From IMG/VR virus record IMGVR_UViG_3300047157_000197, positions 1 through 64,000 of that record: a stretch of DNA of 64,000 nt; one strand, 5' to 3'. Every line of letters starts with the position of its first letter. Position 1 is the first letter of the stretch. The translations under genes were made by a program, and so were the position numbers. Of this stretch, positions 4,333 through 44,482 are shown one piece after another. The notes beneath the pieces were generated by a model that saw nothing but the letters and a program-made list of their open reading frames with translations, was not told where the DNA came from and did not search any database.

Positions 4333-4562
4333 TGAGATATACAGAACTAAACGATAAAAAGTTAAAATGGATAAATAAATTTTTTGATACTATATATGGA
4401 TATTATTGTGATGGTAACAATAGAGTTTACCAATGGGAACTTCAAAAAGAATTGAAGTTTTTAAACTATATTAAAGATTGTGGTGAATATACCTTAGAAG
4501 ATGCAGATAAATTAAACTCAATAAAAAACTTATATAATCATATAAAAAATGGACAAGTATAG
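4332..4562 (+). CDS. Small helical protein, paralog family member 3
   Basis: GEYTLEDADKLNSIKNLYN motif; stop/start overlap. Confidence 0.65.
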   Translation: MRYTELNDKKLKWINKFFDTIYGYYCDGNNRVYQWELQKELKFLNYIKDCGEYTLEDADKLNSIKNLYNHIKNGQV

Positions 4563-4770
4563 AAAAACTGATGGTAATAAATATTACCTAAAACAACTCA
4601 ATTCCGAATCAGGTGAATTAGAGTGGATAGAAATTAACTTAGAAAGTAGTACAGAACCAGTAGTAGAATTATCAAAAAATGAGATGATTCTGAATAAACC
4701 TACACATGAGTACTATTTTGAAAGAGAGTTTCCTGATTATGTAACCAAATCAGAGTATGAAGATAAATAA
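4549..4770 (+). CDS. Hypothetical protein
   Basis: 73 aa ORF in tightly packed operon. Confidence 0.55.
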   Translation: MDKYRKTDGNKYYLKQLNSESGELEWIEINLESSTEPVVELSKNEMILNKPTHEYYFEREFPDYVTKSEYEDK

Positions 4771-11246: not shown

Positions 11247-13055
11247 ATGAATGAAGTTGAAAAAAGGATAAAACATCAAATAGATAACAATACTGGTCAA
11301 GTTGATTTAAAGATTGATTTGGTTAAGTATATGCAACAATCTGAACGTGCCAAACAATACGAGGAATCGGTGAAGGAAAAGGGTGAGGAATTCAAACACC
11401 AATTTCGATATGAGGTAATCGGTGAACAAGATGCACTTCTTTTTCAAGTTCCCAATATAAACGAATCGGGTTATTACGCGGGTGTGGTTGCCTTAAAATC
11501 ATATGTAGATAAGTTCCATTCGGATTTGAACGTTGAGATTATCGACCCCATTATAGATTACTTCTATTTAAACCCACCTAACAAAGAAGGTGATTTCTTT
11601 CAAATGTTTAATACCTACGCAAGACAAGGTGAGTGGGAAGAACTTTTAAAGTTTCAAGAGATACATGATATGTGCGAAGGATTCATTTTCAAATACATAG
11701 ATAAGTGTAATCCCGCCTTTATTGGTTTAAGTATCATTGATGGTAATATAGATGCATCTCTCGCAATTTCAAGTTTAATAAAAAAGAAATACCCTCATAT
11801 TAAAATACTAATGGGTGGAAATGGAATCGAGGTTTTAGATTTCGGTATGTTACCTAACTCAAAATATACTACAATAAATTATGATTTTGTAGATGTATTT
11901 TCAAGAGGTGATGGTGAAGCAACATTTGTTGAAATTCTTAAATGTGATATGAGTGATGATGCTCTTTCAAAGATTAAAGGTCTTGTTTGGAGAAAATCAA
12001 CAGGTGGGTATGTAGATACTCCAATGGAATTGACTCACAATCCAACGAGAGAAAACATAGATATGAATTCATTACCAATGCCTGATTATTCATCATTGGA
12101 ACAAAATTATTATTACCACTCTACATATCAATATTCAGTTCCTTTAGTTTTAAGTAGAGGTTGTCCATATCGTTGTACCTTTTGTTCAGTACCAGAATTT
12201 ATACCTGTATTTAGATATAGAACACACGAGAGTGTTTTAGAAGAAATGGAGTATTGGATAAACAAAGGAAGAAAGGGATTCTTCATGCACGATAGTATTA
12301 TCAATGGTAATCCAAAATGGTTAATGACCTTTTGTGAAATGATAATAGAAAGGTGGGGAGAATATCAAATTGATTTCGGTGGTAATATGAGATTACAAAA
12401 TGTAATGAGAAACTTAGATACAATGTGGTTATTTAGAAGAGCAGGATTATCCAAGATGATAACTGGCTTTGAATCTGCATCTGAACCTGTTTTGAAACAT
12501 ATGAAGAAATATACTTCTATGGAAGGTGTACGAGAAATCTTTGATAATGTAAGAGCAATAAACAAAGTACTACAAAAGGAAAGACCTCATGCACCAAAGA
12601 TGCAATTTGCAATGCAACTTATTATTGGGTACTTAAATGAAACACGAGTAGATTTTCAACGAACAGTAGATTTCGTAAAAGAATATAATGATTGTATGTC
12701 AGAGATACTTACTTGTTCTGCATTTCTACTTCATCAAACCCTACAAGATAAATGGGTAAAAGAAGGAGAACCTCTTATTCAACATAGAAACTCTGTTATA
12801 TTTGATACAATGTATAACACCACACAGAACAGATTAGATTGGTTAAATGAAATAGAGGTGGTTTTTAAAAATTACAACTTACCATATTCCATATACAATA
12901 GAGGAATCTTTTATGAACTTATAAAAGAAAACGAAAATGAACAAGTTCATTACACATGGATTGATGGAGAATTATTCTTTGGCCCAAACGGAGAAACTCC
13001 TCACATAAAACAAATCCAAGAAAAACTTGGTATAGTAAAAAAACAATTATTTTAA
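11247..13055 (+). CDS. B12-binding radical SAM protein (class B methyltransferase-like)
   Basis: SRGCPYRCTFC (CxxxCxxC), cobalamin-binding-like FIGLS...ILMGG and RGDGE segments. Confidence 0.88.
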   Translation: MNEVEKRIKHQIDNNTGQVDLKIDLVKYMQQSERAKQYEESVKEKGEEFKHQFRYEVIGEQDALLFQVPNINESGYYAGVVALKSYVDKFHSDLNVEIIDPIIDYFYLNPPNKEGDFFQMFNTYARQGEWEELLKFQEIHDMCEGFIFKYIDKCNPAFIGLSIIDGNIDASLAISSLIKKKYPHIKILMGGNGIEVLDFGMLPNSKYTTINYDFVDVFSRGDGEATFVEILKCDMSDDALSKIKGLVWRKSTGGYVDTPMELTHNPTRENIDMNSLPMPDYSSLEQNYYYHSTYQYSVPLVLSRGCPYRCTFCSVPEFIPVFRYRTHESVLEEMEYWINKGRKGFFMHDSIINGNPKWLMTFCEMIIERWGEYQIDFGGNMRLQNVMRNLDTMWLFRRAGLSKMITGFESASEPVLKHMKKYTSMEGVREIFDNVRAINKVLQKERPHAPKMQFAMQLIIGYLNETRVDFQRTVDFVKEYNDCMSEILTCSAFLLHQTLQDKWVKEGEPLIQHRNSVIFDTMYNTTQNRLDWLNEIEVVFKNYNLPYSIYNRGIFYELIKENENEQVHYTWIDGELFFGPNGETPHIKQIQEKLGIVKKQLF

Positions 13056-14944: not shown

Positions 14945-14976
14945 TTAGGATATTACAAATATTTTTCGTATATTTG
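14945..14976 (+). promoter_or_regulatory. Bacteroidota-type promoter
   Basis: TTAGG-N19-TATATTTG, exact TAnnTTTG match. Confidence 0.8.
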
Positions 14977-14993: not shown

Positions 14994-15182
14994 ATGAGAA
15001 AATTAACATACAAAATAACAGAAGTATCTAATACTTATGGATTAGAGTTTATTACCGATAGAAGTGATAAATGGACTAAAGAACAATATACAAGAAATAG
15101 AAAACCATTAACAATGGAATTAATTAGTGATGAAACCACAAAAGAAAAAGAACCAATATCAAGAAAAATTAAGTTGGGATGA
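14994..15182 (+). CDS. Hypothetical protein
   Basis: 62 aa, first gene after promoter. Confidence 0.6.
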   Translation: MRKLTYKITEVSNTYGLEFITDRSDKWTKEQYTRNRKPLTMELISDETTKEKEPISRKIKLG

Positions 15183-15183
15183 T

Positions 15184-15303
15184 ATGTCATATGGTGAGGC
15201 TTCTCATCATATTGGTAAAAAGACAACTGAGAAGGTTCACAAATCTCAAAAACAATATTCAAGAAAACCCAAACACAAAAACAGATTTACAGATGATGAA
15301 TAA
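15184..15303 (+). CDS. 39 aa basic peptide with ArfA-like YxRKxKH motif, missing from ORF track
   Basis: MSYGEASHHIGKKTTEKVHKSQKQYSRKPKHKNRFTDDE; starts 1 nt after the upstream stop. Confidence 0.5.
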   Translation: MSYGEASHHIGKKTTEKVHKSQKQYSRKPKHKNRFTDDE

Positions 15304-15787
15304 AAGACAGCTATTAATTATTGGATTTATTCTTATGGCAATAATAGTGAGAGTATTACCACATCCACCTAATGTTACACCAATACTTGCAATCGCTTTA
15401 TTTGGTGGAACTACATTTAAAAACAAATGGCTTGGTGTGTTACTACCTCTGATAGCAATGGGAATATCTGATATGTATTTAGGTTTTTATAGTATCTCTT
15501 ATTGGGTATATGGTTCGTTCTTTCTTGTTAGTATGTTAGGAACATATTGGAAAAAGATAGGGGTTAAGAATGTACTTATATCATCTTTAATCTTTTTTAT
15601 AATTACCAACTTTGGAGTTTGGTTAGGTGGTTATCCAAAAACAATAGAAGGGTTTTTACTTTGTTATACAATGGCAATACCTTTCTTTATAAACTCTATA
15701 TTAGGAAATTTATTTTTCAGTTATCTATTAAAGTATTCATTTAGATATTCTGAAAAGAAACTTATGCTCGGTTCGTCTATCGGTTAG
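15293..15787 (+). CDS. DUF6580-like putative transporter (ECF S-component-like)
   Basis: RVLPHPPNVTPILAIALFGG motif, multiple TMs; start moved to ATG 15293. Confidence 0.7.
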   Translation: MMNKRQLLIIGFILMAIIVRVLPHPPNVTPILAIALFGGTTFKNKWLGVLLPLIAMGISDMYLGFYSISYWVYGSFFLVSMLGTYWKKIGVKNVLISSLIFFIITNFGVWLGGYPKTIEGFLLCYTMAIPFFINSILGNLFFSYLLKYSFRYSEKKLMLGSSIG

Positions 15788-15837
15788 GACCTCAGGTTTT
15801 CATCCTGGTAAGAGGGGTTCGATTCCCCTACCGAGTA
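15766..15837 (+). tRNA. trnE: tRNA-Glu(TTC), no encoded CCA
   Basis: Acceptor GCTCGGT/ACCGAGT, anticodon arm CAGG-TTTTCAT-CCTG, T-loop TTCGATT. Confidence 0.93.
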
Positions 15838-15884
15838 CAACTATTGTTCATTGAAATATTGTTTAATTAAATAAAAATAAAATT

Positions 15885-16244
15885 ATGGAAACACTTTATA
15901 TTGTAATAGGTGCATTCTCATCCATTTTTATATTCCTTTTGGGATATGCGGTGAGTGGTGTGTTTAATGGAAAAAAAAGAGTAGATGAACTTGAGAAGTT
16001 CATTGATGTAACAGATGATAGAGTTACAGAAGTAGATAGAGAAAGAAACTTTTGGAAAGAAGATACTTACGCAACTCTTGAACGCTTAAACGAAGAAGAT
16101 GATAATATAAAAAAATTATTAGATTCAAGATTAGATAGATTAGAAAGTAGAATTATAGGTATGATTCCACCTACCAACGAAGAGTTGATGAAGCGAATCG
16201 AGAAAATAGAAGAAGAATCTTACAGATTAAGAATGAATATGTAA
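15885..16244 (+). CDS. N-terminal TM plus coiled-coil protein
   Basis: Hydrophobic N-terminus, heptad-rich remainder. Confidence 0.6.
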   Translation: METLYIVIGAFSSIFIFLLGYAVSGVFNGKKRVDELEKFIDVTDDRVTEVDRERNFWKEDTYATLERLNEEDDNIKKLLDSRLDRLESRIIGMIPPTNEELMKRIEKIEEESYRLRMNM

Positions 16245-16267: not shown

Positions 16268-16353
<86 letters not shown>

Positions 16354-16357
16354 AAAA

Positions 16358-16431
16358 GGGGAATTAGCTCAGTTGGCTAGAGCACTACGCTTGCACCGTA
16401 GGGGTCATCGGTTCGAATCCGATATTCTCCA
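16358..16431 (+). tRNA. trnA: tRNA-Ala(TGC)
   Basis: GGGGAAT/ATTCTCC acceptor with G3-U70, CTACG-CTTGCAC-CGTAG anticodon arm. Confidence 0.93.
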
Positions 16432-16472
16432 CAATGGTGGTATCACCACTAATTAATAATAATAATAAAAAC

Positions 16473-16943
16473 ATGAGTAAATTAAAAGAAAAGTTTGGTA
16501 AATACTTTCAATTCAAAAATACCACAAATGGAACTGATTACTTTTTAAGAGGATTGGCACTAATATTATTCATCATTCCAATAGGAATATGTATAGGAAT
16601 AGGAATCGCATTACTTCCATCTAATCCAGCAATCGCAGGATTATTAGTTGGGTTAGGTGTATTGGGTGTTATACCAATGATATGGTTTTCACTAGCAACT
16701 ACTTACAAAAGAATCAATGCATTCTTTCCTGGTAAAGCTGGATGGTTAGTAGCAATAACAATTTTATATTCTTTTATCTTAGAAGCATTTAATCCTCAGA
16801 ATGTATTAAATACGTTGGATACACCAGCACCAACTTTACCTAATGGAGATTACATTACTTATTTAGTATTAGCAATACCTTCATTAGTGTGGAGTTTATA
16901 TTTACTATTTGGTAATTCAAAAGTTAAAAAACATATTGGATAA
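16473..16943 (+). CDS. DUF805-like membrane protein
   Basis: YFLRG...SLATTYKRINA pattern; start moved to ATG 16473. Confidence 0.6.
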   Translation: MSKLKEKFGKYFQFKNTTNGTDYFLRGLALILFIIPIGICIGIGIALLPSNPAIAGLLVGLGVLGVIPMIWFSLATTYKRINAFFPGKAGWLVAITILYSFILEAFNPQNVLNTLDTPAPTLPNGDYITYLVLAIPSLVWSLYLLFGNSKVKKHIG

Positions 16944-17320
16944 TGAATAAGGTATTCTTATTTATATTACTTCTAACTTCTTCCTTACTTAGTTCACAAA
17001 ACTTTGTTGGGGAGAATTTTAGGTTATCAACGGATAGTGGTAACGTAGTAATTACATTTGAGGACCAAAATTCTGATGGAACTTATATTGGTGGTGTACT
17101 AACTAAATCATTTGGAAAACTTACAATTACAAAAAAAGAATTCCAAACTAAGTTTATTCCTAATCTAAAAAAGATTAGTGGTAAAAAAGATTATGAGATA
17201 GTAGAAGGTTCATATCGATTAGATAAATACTCGTTTGATACAGAGAGTGTATTTATACAAGTAGGTAATAAGATAGGTTCTATTACAACAAAAGAAATTA
17301 AAAAGTTAAGAAAACTATAA
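16943..17320 (+). CDS. Secreted protein
   Basis: Signal peptide ending LLSS|Q. Confidence 0.6.
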   Translation: MNKVFLFILLLTSSLLSSQNFVGENFRLSTDSGNVVITFEDQNSDGTYIGGVLTKSFGKLTITKKEFQTKFIPNLKKISGKKDYEIVEGSYRLDKYSFDTESVFIQVGNKIGSITTKEIKKLRKL

Positions 17321-17326
17321 AACTAA

Positions 17327-17401
17327 GCCTTTGTAGCTCAGCTGGCTAGAGCATCTGCATTTGTAATCAGAATGTCGTGGGTTCGAGTCCCTCCAAAGGC
17401 T
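17327..17401 (+). tRNA. trnT: tRNA-Thr(TGT) with an extra nucleotide in the anticodon stem
   Basis: GCCTTTG/CAAAGGC acceptor; TCTG(C)A-TTTGTAA-TCAGA anticodon arm. Confidence 0.82.
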
Positions 17402-17424
17402 CAATAATAATTTAAACAAAGTAA

Positions 17425-20726: not shown

Positions 20727-23021
20727 ATGAAAGGAACTTTATTCTCAGCGGATTTTATAGAAGATTCAAGCTCAAACCTTAGATTATTAGAATTAAATAC
20801 CGATACTGGTTTTATATCAAATACATTAGATACACGATTTGATTTTACAGCTTTCAACACAGTACTATCAACAAATAATATAACAGAGCTAGTTATTGTT
20901 TATAAAGATTTTCAAAAAAACTTTGTAACAACACTTGAATCATATATACAATCCAACGCAACATTTATAACAACAGTTACAAAACAAGTTGAGGATTCTG
21001 ATAGTATATATCCTACGGCAGTTACTGATGCTGCTGATAAGTTTATACTTAGGTTAGCATATGATGAAAACGCATTGTTTGATTCAACGTATTGTAAAGA
21101 AAGAGCAAATGTACAAAAATTATTTTATGATAATTCTGCAACAGGTTCTATACCTGAGTTTTATTATAGTGGTAGTGATTATGTTGTAAATACACTTACT
21201 AGTGATTTAAACGCACATTCAATTTTACCTGATTTAGTTGTTAAAGATAAAACAGAAACATTTAGTCCTTTAAGGTTTTTAAAACTTGGTAACGCAACAT
21301 CAGCTTCTGCAGATAGAATTAGTGATTACGTTAACAATTACATAGGAGATTCTCAAACAGTTGAAAAATTCCATTACAACAATGCAGATATTACAGCGGA
21401 TAATAAATTATCAGCTATAAGAATATTTGGGATTGTATATGGTTCAGATATTAATCATGTAGTTATTGGTCAATATAAAGTACCATCGTTTTTTGAAATA
21501 CCAACGGCCGATTCTTTATCTTATATAGAATCTAATAAATTAATAAATGAATACCAACCTAAACATTATTTTGAACTTACTTCAAATTATGTTAGACTTA
21601 CAACAGAAGATGCAATTCATAAAGATGAAGTAGTAATCACATCTACTGATGGTGAACTACAAGTAGAAAATGTAGTAACTGGTTCTCTGCTTAAATCAAT
21701 GTTTATTGCTGGGTCACCAGATACTGATGATTTAGATGTTTATAAACATTGGGTTGCAACTGGTTCTATACTTCCAAGCGGTTCGTTTGTAACACAATCA
21801 ATTGTTACTTCAGTTGAGGAAAGTTCGCTTGATAATTATGGTATGACTGGAGAAATTATATTAGCAAATGATGAAAAAATATATACATCTATAACAAAAA
21901 ATTTATTAGCATATAATACAAGTTCTAATGATTATAGATTCTTACAACAGTACGAACTAATACCATCAGAACATTTCTTAGTAGATAAAGATGATAATAA
22001 AATTAATATAGTAGCTAACAATGTTGCAGTATTAGATGATGCATCAATTGAAAATTATTATAGAATTGATGTTGAAACAACCGATTCATATTTTGTAAGT
22101 GCATCTGCAAATTCATTTATTGTTCACAATGCTCCATGTTTTATAGCAGGAACTAAAGTTCATATAGAAGAAAAAGGAATAACAAACATTGAAGATGTTG
22201 AAGTTGGAGATAAAGTTATTTCATACAACCACGATACAGACACATCAGAATATAAAGAAGTATTAAAGGTTAGAAAACAAGAAGATAAAAATGTTGTAAA
22301 ATATGTATTTGAAAATGGTACAGAATTAACAGGTACACCAGACCACCCATTGTTTGTAAATGGCAAAGGATACTCTTCATATTATCCAAAAGAAACACTT
22401 GAAGATAGTGGATTGGACGTAGAACAGATATTACTTGGTGATGAAGTTTTACATATAGATGGATATGGTGTAGTTATATCTGATATTATAGAGATAGAAG
22501 AAACACATACAGTTTATAATCTAGAAGAAGTAGAAGATAATCATAACTTTTTTGTAAACCAATTTTTGGCACACAATAGAGAAAGTTTACCTTGTTGTTT
22601 TATCGCAGGTACACAAATATCTTTATCTAATAACGATAGTAAAAATATAGAAGATATTATAATAGGTGATGAAGTAATAGGTTGGAAAGATGGTGAGTTT
22701 ACAAATGGTCTTGTAACTGAGTTAAAACCAACAATACTAGGTAACCGTTCTTTATATAATATCAACGATTTTGAATTAACATTTACAAGTGAACATCCAT
22801 TTTTAACAAAAGATGGTTGGAAATCAATTGCACCAGATAGTGGAACTGGTTATGGAATTTTAGAAGTAAATGATATTATCAATAAAGATGGTAAATGGAT
22901 TCAAATAAAAGAAATCAAAGAAGTTCAAGGAGATGCTGAATACAACACTCCAGTTTATAACTTTACAGTAAAGGATATTCGCAGTTATATTGCTGATGGT
23001 ATCGTAGTACATAACAAATAA
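20727..23021 (+). CDS. Protein with three tandem Hint (intein-like) domains, the first degenerate
   Basis: ...IVHN-AP-CFIAGTKV...TPDH...LAHN-RESLPC-CFIAGTQI...TSEH...VVHN-K. Confidence 0.85.
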   Translation: MKGTLFSADFIEDSSSNLRLLELNTDTGFISNTLDTRFDFTAFNTVLSTNNITELVIVYKDFQKNFVTTLESYIQSNATFITTVTKQVEDSDSIYPTAVTDAADKFILRLAYDENALFDSTYCKERANVQKLFYDNSATGSIPEFYYSGSDYVVNTLTSDLNAHSILPDLVVKDKTETFSPLRFLKLGNATSASADRISDYVNNYIGDSQTVEKFHYNNADITADNKLSAIRIFGIVYGSDINHVVIGQYKVPSFFEIPTADSLSYIESNKLINEYQPKHYFELTSNYVRLTTEDAIHKDEVVITSTDGELQVENVVTGSLLKSMFIAGSPDTDDLDVYKHWVATGSILPSGSFVTQSIVTSVEESSLDNYGMTGEIILANDEKIYTSITKNLLAYNTSSNDYRFLQQYELIPSEHFLVDKDDNKINIVANNVAVLDDASIENYYRIDVETTDSYFVSASANSFIVHNAPCFIAGTKVHIEEKGITNIEDVEVGDKVISYNHDTDTSEYKEVLKVRKQEDKNVVKYVFENGTELTGTPDHPLFVNGKGYSSYYPKETLEDSGLDVEQILLGDEVLHIDGYGVVISDIIEIEETHTVYNLEEVEDNHNFFVNQFLAHNRESLPCCFIAGTQISLSNNDSKNIEDIIIGDEVIGWKDGEFTNGLVTELKPTILGNRSLYNINDFELTFTSEHPFLTKDGWKSIAPDSGTGYGILEVNDIINKDGKWIQIKEIKEVQGDAEYNTPVYNFTVKDIRSYIADGIVVHNK

Positions 23022-42763: not shown

Positions 42764-44482
42764 ATGAGTAACGGTTATATTTTAGGAATAAGTTGTGGTT
42801 ATCATGATAGTGCAGCTGCATTAATTAAAGATGGGAATGTTTTGGGTGCATGTGAAGAAGAAAGATTCACTGGTATCAAACATGATTCTAGATTTCCAAT
42901 TAATACTATAAAGTGGTTAATGAAAACATACAAAGTAACACCAGATACTTTAAACGCTATCTGTTTTTACGAAAACCCACAAAATAAATTAGATAGAATA
43001 AAAGTAAGTACCGAAAAAAAACCTAAAAAATGGTATGAGTTTTTAAATAAAAAAAATAGTATTTTAATTAAAAATCAAGAGGCTTATAAAATTCTTCAAG
43101 AACAATTAAAAACTCTTTGTGGTAAAAATACAAAAATACATTATACTGACCACCACCAATCACATTTAGCATATTCATATTACACTTCAAACTTTAACGA
43201 ATCTGCAATCCTTTCAGTTGATGGTGTAGGTGAGTGGGAAACAACTGTTTTAGGAATAGGAACTGAAAATAAAATAAAAAAATTAAATAGTGTAAATTTT
43301 CCTCATTCCCTTGGAATGTTATATTCAACATTTACTGCCTTTCTTGGGTTTAAACCAAACGAGGGTGAGTATAAAGTAATGGGTTTAGCACCATATGGTA
43401 AACCTGAAAAGTATAATAAATTATTTAAGGAATTATATACAGAAAAAGAAGATGGTACTTTTGAATTAAAAATGGAGTACTTTACATACGAGTATTCTAA
43501 TACACATATGTTTAATGAAAAGTTAGGAAAATTATTTGAATTTCCAAACAGATTACCAGAAGAGCCATTAGAACAACATCACAAGGATTTAGCAGCATCA
43601 TTACAATACAATTACGAAAAACTATTTTTTAGATTATTGAATGAATTACATGATAAAACAAAATCTGACAACTTATGTTTGAGTGGTGGGTGTGCTTATA
43701 ATGGAACTGCAAATGGTAAGATATTAAAAAGAACAAACTTTAAAAATCTATACATCCCACCTGCTCCATCAGATGCTGGTTCTGCTATTGGATGTGGACT
43801 TGATTATTACTATAAATCAAAAGATAATGTAAGAATAAAAAATTCAAACCCATATCTTGGTCCAATGTATTCAAAAGATGAAATTTTTGAAGCAACAGAA
43901 AAATATAAAGATAAAATTTGGGTAGAAACAAAACTTTATGAACAAATTATTGATATTGTTGCTGAAGAAATTAAAGATGGTAGTGTTATAGGATGGTTTC
44001 AAGGTAGGATGGAGTTTGGTGCACGTGCATTAGGTAATCGTTCTATCTTAGCAAATCCAAGAGACCCTCAAATGAAATCTCGTTTAAATAAGATGATTAA
44101 AAAAAGAGAAGGGTTTAGACCTTTTGCTCCAATTGTAAAAGAATCTTCTTCAACCAGTTATTTTAATTACGAAGATACTGTACCTTATATGAATCAGGTA
44201 GTAAAGGTAAAAAGCCATCATGCAAAAAACTTACCAGCAATAACACATATTGATAATTCAGCTAGAATACAAACTCTAAATAAAAATCAACATAGACATA
44301 TGTTTTCTTTGTTAGAAAAATTAGAAACAATAAATGATTACCCTATTGTTATAAACACTTCATTTAATTTAAAAGACCAAACAATGGTTCTTACACCCGA
44401 GGATGCAATTAAAACTTTCTTAAATTGTGAAATGGATATTCTTATACTTCATAACCTTATAATTAAAAAAAAGATACTTTAG
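42764..44482 (+). CDS. Carbamoyltransferase (NodU/CmcH/TobZ family)
   Basis: GYHDSAA, EEERF, HHQSH, VDGVGE, GEYKVMGLAPYG, SDAG, GARALGNRS, RPFAP, NTSFN. Confidence 0.95.
   Translation: MSNGYILGISCGYHDSAAALIKDGNVLGACEEERFTGIKHDSRFPINTIKWLMKTYKVTPDTLNAICFYENPQNKLDRIKVSTEKKPKKWYEFLNKKNSILIKNQEAYKILQEQLKTLCGKNTKIHYTDHHQSHLAYSYYTSNFNESAILSVDGVGEWETTVLGIGTENKIKKLNSVNFPHSLGMLYSTFTAFLGFKPNEGEYKVMGLAPYGKPEKYNKLFKELYTEKEDGTFELKMEYFTYEYSNTHMFNEKLGKLFEFPNRLPEEPLEQHHKDLAASLQYNYEKLFFRLLNELHDKTKSDNLCLSGGCAYNGTANGKILKRTNFKNLYIPPAPSDAGSAIGCGLDYYYKSKDNVRIKNSNPYLGPMYSKDEIFEATEKYKDKIWVETKLYEQIIDIVAEEIKDGSVIGWFQGRMEFGARALGNRSILANPRDPQMKSRLNKMIKKREGFRPFAPIVKESSSTSYFNYEDTVPYMNQVVKVKSHHAKNLPAITHIDNSARIQTLNKNQHRHMFSLLEKLETINDYPIVINTSFNLKDQTMVLTPEDAIKTFLNCEMDILILHNLIIKKKIL

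Follow-up and report, generated by a model that had tools for sequence, protein, structure and literature searches.

In the virus record IMGVR_UViG_3300047157_000197 (275,970 bp, 30.5% G+C), a gene for a membrane protein of the DUF6580 family was found to end inside the tRNA-Glu gene that follows it. The window, that is, the whole stretch of DNA analysed here, comprises the first 64 kb (positions 1 to 64,000) of the record, and the locus looks like the start of a tightly packed array in which protein genes alternate with tRNA genes. The phage is a marine jumbo phage with a genome of 276 kb. The most fitting description of the locus is tRNA-punctuated gene packing in a phage, with a stop codon inside a tRNA. 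The overlap is probably explained by such packing together with insertion of the DUF6580 gene in front of tRNA-Glu; it would then be tolerated, not a dedicated device, and the small basic protein encoded by a gene overlapping the DUF6580 start would be neither a homologue of the ribosome rescue factor ArfA nor a demonstrable partner of the overlap. The overlap, of 22 nucleotides (nt), is defined by three features.

15296..15787, + strand: DUF6580 membrane-protein gene (PF20221); start at ATG 15296, or possibly 15293, from comparison with relatives
15766..15838, + strand: tRNA-Glu(UUC), called by ARAGORN and matched by the Rfam tRNA model RF00005; no encoded CCA
15766..15787, + strand: protein gene/tRNA overlap, 22 nt; TAG 15785-15787 in the D-loop; expected RNase P site 15765/15766

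The DUF6580 stop codon lies within tRNA-Glu

The open reading frame (ORF) extends from 15179 to 15787 with no in-frame stop ahead of the TAG at 15785-15787, and positions 1-22 of the tRNA correspond to the last base of a Met codon, six codons and the stop of the DUF6580 gene. A preliminary description of the window, made from the sequence alone, had placed the DUF6580 stop inside tRNA-Glu, and its coordinates and sequence were found to be correct by ORF scan, ARAGORN and Rfam. The Rfam model scored 51.7 bits at 15766-15837 (gathering score 29), and comparison of 10 tRNA-Glu copies revealed compensatory double changes in nine of the 21 stem pairs and no broken pair. Because the pairs change by compensation and none is broken, the tRNA-Glu is judged to be functional and under selection, and the tail peptide of the DUF6580 protein simply follows the tRNA. 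Recoding of the stop was ruled out as an explanation for the TAG: the phage genome uses the standard genetic code, TAA, TGA and TAG all terminate long ORFs (TAG in 27 of 238), and there is no suppressor tRNA.

The preliminary description had also proposed that the overlap be looked for in relatives. Five close relatives were available in IMG/VR (L001-L005) and a further one, L134, was taken from ENA assemblies. The same junction, with the TAG in the D-loop, was identical in L001, L002, L003, L005, and L134, the tRNA in each case beginning at the third base of the codon that follows KKL or NKI, and protein identity across the overlap-bearing relatives was 77-84%. The acceptor stems vary by compensatory changes (GCUCGGU, GGCCCCU, and GGCCCGU), and the DUF6580 tails track them (MLGSSIG, LAPSSIG, and LARSSNG). 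Conservation of the overlap is one inherited event, with a single evolutionary origin.

In the remaining close relative, L004, whose DUF6580 protein is 77% identical, the gene has its own TAA and the tail INFNIK after the shared KL, with no tRNA nearby. Own stops were also present in 30 further viral and 80 cellular DUF6580 genes, none of which had an adjacent tRNA-Glu. The non-conserved tails of these proteins mostly extend 0-14 residues beyond the end of the family match, and up to ~ 30 where the match stops early; the C-terminal tail of the DUF6580 family is short and unconstrained, and fusion into a tRNA is tolerated for that reason. In one bacterial metagenome-assembled genome (Bacillati ANGP1; L070, 4001-4567) a DUF6580 frame also enters a tRNA, the tRNA-Leu at 4530-4619, which is probably an unrelated chance extension in a G+C-rich genome. 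When GenBank phages were searched at the nucleotide and protein levels, the region and its two proteins, DUF6580 and the small one, gave tRNA matches only or nothing useful.

Packing of the tRNA array

Beyond tRNA-Glu, the array continues with three ORFs and three tRNAs.

15885-16244, + strand: ORF, from the ORF list
16268-16353, + strand: tRNA-Ser, from the tRNA search
16358-16432, + strand: tRNA-Ala, from the tRNA search
16434-16943, + strand: ORF, starting 1 nt past tRNA-Ala
16943-17320, + strand: ORF, from the ORF list
17327-17402, + strand: tRNA-Thr(UGU), given by ARAGORN as 'tRNA-???'

The whole 276-kb genome holds four tRNAs only, all within 15.7-17.4 kb. Downstream of tRNA-Glu the gaps from a stop codon to the next tRNA are 23 and 6 nt and those from a tRNA to the next ORF are 1-46 nt. 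At 10 related loci every tRNA stands in a single-strand ORF-tRNA-ORF array, with stop-to-tRNA gaps of mostly 6-26 nt and tRNA-to-ORF gaps of 1-46 nt. The four tRNAs read GAA, UCA, GCA, and ACA, each being the top codon of its family in the long ORFs of the phage, and GAA makes up 84% of the Glu codons.

A second reading frame that enters a tRNA was identified among the relatives. In L134/L135, the gene for the small basic protein ends ...ATG GGG AAT TAG, its last 10 nt being tRNA-Ala positions 1-10 and its TAG tRNA-Ala positions 8-10 (L134 4171-4180; also in L135 and L128), and L134 carries both overlaps, that of DUF6580 with tRNA-Glu and that of the small gene with tRNA-Ala. The small protein of the L134/L135 type (P0030) was indexed in 29 blocks of the collection. 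Reading frames have come to enter a tRNA at least twice in the phage group, and the overlaps of −22 and −10 nt look like the extreme of a continuum of packing.

The order of the tRNAs is shuffled among the relatives, and the tRNA cluster is thus a rearrangement hot spot. The tRNA-Thr(UGU) has one additional C in the 5′ strand of its anticodon stem, which accounts for the ARAGORN call. The tRNA-Thr of the relatives is of a normal 75 nt, and base 17358 is absent from some RNA-run contigs of related strains; the extra C may reflect variation between strains, a fault of the assembly or an unusual tRNA.

The small basic gene is conserved independently of the overlap

15130..15303, + strand: gene for a small basic protein of 57 amino acids; N terminus conserved among relatives; stop TAA 15301-15303

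The gene had been described before as an ORF of 39 amino acids starting at ATG 15184. The reported segment EKVHKSQKQYSRKPKHKNR is indeed present, but the true gene encodes 57 amino acids from ATG 15130, because relatives conserve 18 further N-terminal residues upstream of ATG 15184 (consensus MK.QKKK..YQEKLSWDD). It shares 53 nt with a 62-amino-acid gene upstream and 8-11 nt with the beginning of the DUF6580 gene, within which its TAA lies. The conserved core of the protein reads WDDM(S/T)YGEASHHIGKKTTEKVHKSKKDYSRKxKHK; the most conserved block is WDDM(S/T)YGEASHHIGKKTTEKVHKS, and the basic stretch after it is more variable in sequence, although its charge is retained. Approximately 100 sequence clusters of the protein (60-96% identity) were found in marine metagenomes, either unnamed or labelled 'hypothetical'. 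One cluster, P0081, carries the label 'phosphoserine aminotransferase', an evident misnomer of the Joint Genome Institute (JGI). Among nine relatives, differences in the gene numbered 925 at third codon positions against 396 and 330 at the other two. An AlphaFold2 model built with 35 sequences had a predicted local distance difference test score (pLDDT) of 64 and a predicted template modelling score (pTM) of 0.13, with one three-residue helical turn as its only secondary structure. The small gene is a real, conserved gene for a disordered phage protein.

DUF7230 (PF23876) matched at 16-18 bits, below its cut-off of 27, over the basic stretch only and weakly in 24 of 35 family members, and phrog_2701 gave a weak match below threshold. 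A profile of the family searched against 1.84 billion representative proteins returned 34 matches, all small unnamed proteins except for two giant repeat proteins, which look spurious. The sole match in a profile search of the PDB was chlorovirus capsid protein P13, treated as a chance match (E 0.5), a Protein Atlas search found viral hypothetical clusters only, and nothing relevant was found in the literature on DUF6580 or DUF7230.

The preliminary description had proposed a pair consisting of a non-stop message and its rescue factor. However, the small gene is present in L004 without any overlap and in L138/L139, where two other genes follow it, again without overlap of a tRNA. In L133, L131, and L129 it is followed by tRNA-Glu after 3, 21, and 38 nt, respectively, with no DUF6580 gene between them; the tRNA-Glu acceptor stem of L133 is the same as that of the window, and in L129 a DUF6580 gene lies 3 kb farther along, past the tRNA cluster. 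In the genome of L004 (G156, 177 kb, one tRNA) the small gene is a diverged copy that lies 130 kb from that tRNA. By synteny, the small gene is a neighbour of the tRNA cluster and is independent of any overlap, and a specific pairing is unlikely because the gene is also present at loci without a coding sequence that enters a tRNA.

The small protein falls outside the ArfA family

The resemblance of the small protein to ArfA, on which the proposed rescue pair was founded, was examined with the E. coli ArfA sequence from the annotated MG1655 record; as a positive control, the Pfam ArfA model (PF03889) scored 89.7 bits on this sequence. BLASTP aligned TEKVHKSQKQYSRKPKHKNR with E. coli ArfA residues 29-48, with 10 of 20 residues identical (E 6e-4 for a single pairwise comparison). 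The Smith-Waterman score of the small protein against E. coli ArfA was 48, a value reached by 0.3% of shuffles (p ~ 0.003), and by ArfA score the small protein ranked second of 3442 stop-to-stop segments in the six frames of the genome. A 290-amino-acid open segment at ~ 202,800 (+ strand), outside the window, scored 52 and thus above the small protein. Such a likeness is uncommon, yet it lacks significance on the scale of the genome, where chance alone would be expected to supply roughly one match of this kind.

The local likeness of the basic stretch was therefore as described, whereas the homology drawn from it was not borne out. With the Pfam ArfA model there was no match to the window protein at E <= 0.1, and at E <= 10 none in the 35 members of the small-protein family and none in the six frames of the genome. 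Searched at E <= 10 with a profile of the small-protein family, the PDB yielded no chain of ArfA. Comparison by hhalign with an alignment of enterobacterial ArfA gave a probability of 17% over 24 columns, and after the addition of five phage ArfA sequences 16% over 21 columns, covering the basic tail only; overall, ArfA columns 29-52 were aligned and the N-terminal PLFRQR block was left unmatched. This N-terminal block of ArfA (the A18 region, D/x-P-L-F-R-Q-R) contacts and activates release factor 2 (RF2), and its residues P23, F25, and R26, nearly invariant in the alignment that includes the five phage ArfA sequences, have no counterpart in the small protein. The C-terminal basic stretch of ArfA, KGKGSYxRKxKH, fills the empty mRNA channel; its GKGS glycines are absent from the small protein. 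Conversely, the WDDMxYGEASHHIG block of the small protein is absent from ArfA. The tail of the ArfA of Pseudoalteromonas phage J2-1 is closer still than that of E. coli ArfA, with nine of 18 residues identical. Judged by these alignments, the small protein has a tail resembling the one with which ArfA binds the mRNA channel but does not belong to the ArfA family.

True ArfA genes were detected by tblastn in phages of Proteobacteria. Three of these stand out for their annotation: gp99 of Salmonella phage Arash (L144) is a true homologue labelled 'ribosomal protein L2', that of Pseudomonas phage pf16 (L143 386-535) lies where no gene is called on that strand, and that of Roseobacter phage CRP-212 (L145 389-511) lies inside an annotated large hypothetical gene. 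The class to which the nearest cellular relative of the DUF6580 gene belongs was represented by 151 genomes, and no ArfA match above the cut-off was found in them.

On the reading first proposed for this locus, the loss of the stop from the DUF6580 message through RNase P is by design, and the small protein is an ArfA-like factor: lodged in the vacant mRNA channel, it brings in a release factor, and the protein is set free untagged instead of being tagged by way of transfer-messenger RNA (tmRNA). This is highly unlikely, although several observations agree with it. Like ArfA, including the ArfA proteins of phage J2-1, Citromicrobium phage vB_CbaS-RXM, and HTVC027P (gp30), the small protein is small, disordered and rich in K and R, sharing Y-x-R-K-x-K-H-x-N-R, and the identities in the tail and the shuffle test are as given above. 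ArfA is unfolded off the ribosome; disorder is, however, usual for very small, highly basic proteins. The arfA gene is expressed from a truncated message, and the stop of the L134-type small gene, lying inside a tRNA, recalls this, since in some relatives RNA processing could likewise remove it. A Smr-domain gene is also nearby, and an ArfA-domain gene has been reported in pelagiphage HTVC027P (PMC12753301), so that true ArfA genes do occur in phages. Set against this are the missing hidden Markov model and profile-profile support, the RF2-activating block without counterpart, the unrelated conserved block that the small protein has of its own, the lack of ArfA over cut-off in the 151 genomes and the occurrence of the small gene without overlap in L004, L138/139, L129, L131, and L133. 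The evidence speaks against homology and against specific pairing. A general counter to RNase-based host defences, also put forward in the preliminary description, is a conjecture. It would be equally improbable, to the point of being a long shot, that the small protein is an ArfA-like channel sensor, independently arisen or diverged past recognition, with which flavobacterial jumbo phages handle stop-less messages, or messages nearly without a 3′ untranslated region, left by excision of their interleaved tRNAs, and which either recruits a release factor or blocks tmRNA tagging.

Alternatively, the small protein may have the ribosome or RNA from the tRNA cluster as its target and work in a manner unlike ArfA, for example as a chaperone of precursor processing, as an mRNA-channel binder that alters host translation, or as a packaged nucleic-acid binder. 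Its ~ 100 conserved clusters with clear coding selection, its very basic and disordered character and its usual position at the upstream edge of the tRNA array are in keeping with such a role, but the diverged copy in G156 lies 130 kb from the only tRNA and no family exceeded its curated cut-off (DUF7230 at 16-18 bits against 27). A role of this kind is considered rather unlikely.

Expected transcript processing at the junction

No terminator-like site was found between the DUF6580 start and the end of tRNA-Glu, nor within the first genes of the array; sigma-70 promoter-like sites occur at shuffle level and terminator-like sites slightly above it. Since the stop lies within the tRNA, any message that holds the stop also holds the 5′ part of the tRNA. 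It is a sound inference from this arrangement that an RNase P cut at 15765/15766 should leave a stop-less message ending ...AAA CUU AU-3′. The region was present, as assembled Logan contigs with a depth of ~ 5, in six metatranscriptome runs. Contigs from DNA runs cross the junction to 15822, whereas those from RNA runs end at 15761 (X16), 15778 (X19) or earlier. The words of the tRNA are shared with tRNA-Glu genes of other organisms, which is why contigs break there. Neither tmRNA nor an RF-1/ArfB domain was found in the 276-kb phage genome.

Proposed origin and expected consequences of the overlap

Because the small gene is followed by tRNA-Glu without a DUF6580 gene in L133, L131, and L129, one lineage would have acquired the DUF6580 gene by insertion between the small gene and this tRNA. 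The insertion would have cost the DUF6580 gene its own last codons and stop, so that its frame now continues through the first 22 nt of the tRNA as far as a TAG made of conserved D-loop bases. Synthesis of the full-length DUF6580 protein would then depend on transcripts from which the tRNA has not been released. During termination at the TAG, the ribosome would unfold the acceptor and D arms; translation and folding of the tRNA would be mutually exclusive at that moment, and termination and folding would compete. After an RNase P cut, the tmRNA of the host would handle the stop-less upstream fragment. The overlap would thus be a tolerated cost or, at the most, a rough means of holding back the membrane protein.

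A different view is that the overlap is a selected switch between termination and tRNA maturation, in which ribosome traffic sets the ratio of membrane protein to tRNA-Glu and this ratio changes during infection. The fused unit is intact in at least three gene orders (window/L001/L002/L005; L003; L134), with a junction identical to the base in all three, and a ribosome at the TAG must, from the size of its footprint, cover the acceptor and D arms. However, retention is automatic once two needed genes overlap, the overlap has a single evolutionary origin, and the close relatives L004, L129, and L092 manage without it. A selected switch is accordingly regarded as unlikely.

Several points nevertheless weigh against tolerated packing after an insertion. 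The direction of the insertion is based on distribution among relatives and not on a rooted tree. The fused unit has been kept through several rearrangements and ~ 20% protein divergence, which a selected function fits too. The difference between RNA and DNA contig ends at the junction suggests nothing firm about cutting by RNase P. Finally, the basic stretch of the small protein beats 99.7% of shuffles against the ArfA tail and is closer still to J2-1 ArfA, and a ribosome-directed role of the protein is possible.

Comparison with known systems

The nearest likeness to the locus is with animal mitochondria, where tRNA punctuation of polycistronic transcripts was reportedly described by Ojala et al. 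in 1981. In animal mitochondria, as in the phage, a single strand carries protein genes and tRNA genes in alternation and nearly without spacers, tRNA excision would separate the messages, and there are coding regions that extend up to or into the following tRNA and are left without a stop after processing. In contrast to the phage, truncated stops in mitochondria are completed by polyadenylation, and the shared length is usually 1-2 nt as against 22 nt. We know of no such stop repair in bacteria or phages, and a cut phage message would therefore be truly non-stop. The array also resembles the compact tRNA clusters of phages of the T4, T5, and KVP40 type, in which tRNAs match preferred A-ending codons and are interleaved with small ORFs on one strand, but the phage group differs in having two independent cases of an upstream frame that ends inside a tRNA. 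Within limited literature searches, no published description was found of a conserved phage coding sequence ending inside a tRNA.

If the processing occurs as proposed, the locus would be a natural case from the bacterial world of a conserved gene that loses its stop whenever the neighbouring tRNA matures, and a simple system for the study of competition among termination, tRNA folding, RNase P and ribosome rescue. Should the small protein prove to be an ArfA-like sensor, alternative rescue would extend to a phylum in which ArfA is not known, tied to a mitochondrion-like, tRNA-punctuated phage operon. There is also a bearing on annotation: PHANOTATE masks tRNAs in gene calling (PMC6853651), and gene callers that do so may truncate or miss genes ending inside tRNAs.

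The DUF6580 protein and its probable host

The DUF6580 protein matched PF20221 with E 3e-47 (161.1 bits against a cut-off of 27) over residues 3-156 of 164 and profile positions 4-158 of 162. Its structural model had a pLDDT of 92.3 and a pTM of 0.86, with seven helical segments and a confidence of ~ 50 over the final residues. The best PDB matches of the model were 4huq_S (template modelling (TM) score 0.64), the solitary cobalamin transporter BtuM, FolT, BioY, and ThiT, with TM scores of 0.55-0.64. In the Foldseek search of the PDB, S-components or BtuM accounted for 11 of the 12 top-ranked matches and for each of the first 12 whose probability was at least 0.5, at TM scores of 0.49-0.64 and weak E values (>= 0.14); sequence identity to S-components was 13-17%. 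By its predicted six-helix membrane fold, the protein is probably a membrane protein similar to the S-components of energy-coupling factor (ECF) systems (FolT, BtuM, BioY, ThiT), for micronutrient uptake, and 'transporter' would be a reasonable reading of that fold. The phage differs from the ECF systems in that no energising module adjoins its DUF6580 gene. Since the nearest cellular DUF6580 homologues belong to marine Bacteroidota, mostly Flavobacteriales (45-57% identity), the phage host is probably a flavobacterium.

Upstream neighbours and other genes of the window

Two further genes lie upstream of the small basic gene.

14994..15182, + strand: conserved gene of 62 amino acids, from the ORF list; homologues upstream of the small gene in L001, L002, L005, L134, L138, L131, and L129
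14726..14944, + strand: gene for a 72-amino-acid Smr-domain protein (Pfam PF01713); neighbourhood context, not shown to take part

The 62-residue product, with the motif IEFITDR...WT..QY.RNR, had no Pfam or PHROG match. Its gene always precedes the small gene, and in most relatives the overlap of the two is ~ 50 nt; L001 has both in one frame, with a stop and 18 nt between them. A TATATTTG motif is present at 14969-14976, just upstream of the 62-residue gene. We take this motif to be a possible −7 promoter element of the Bacteroidota type, the count of −7 motifs in the genome not being informative.

The 72-residue protein is little beyond its Smr domain, for which the cut-off is 25.7 bits and the score was 28.1 bits, or 26.7 bits when the six frames were searched, and no PDB sequence match was found for it. 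In L138/L139, too, a Smr domain was called ~ 0.9 kb ahead of the small gene, and L005 has at 1459-1680 a 73-amino-acid ORF that was judged similar by eye. Where ribosomes collide, the message is cleaved by Smr nucleases such as SmrB, and the placing of a Smr gene beside a possible non-stop message is curious.

Elsewhere in the window, a 764-amino-acid ORF at 20727-23021 (+ strand) carries a Hint/intein-type module, with several Hint-family Pfam matches at residues 460-660. Two auxiliary enzymes are also encoded on the + strand: a radical SAM protein at 11247-13055, which in addition has a weak, sub-threshold match to a B12-binding domain, and a carbamoyltransferase at 42764-44482, with strong matches to both Pfam domains.

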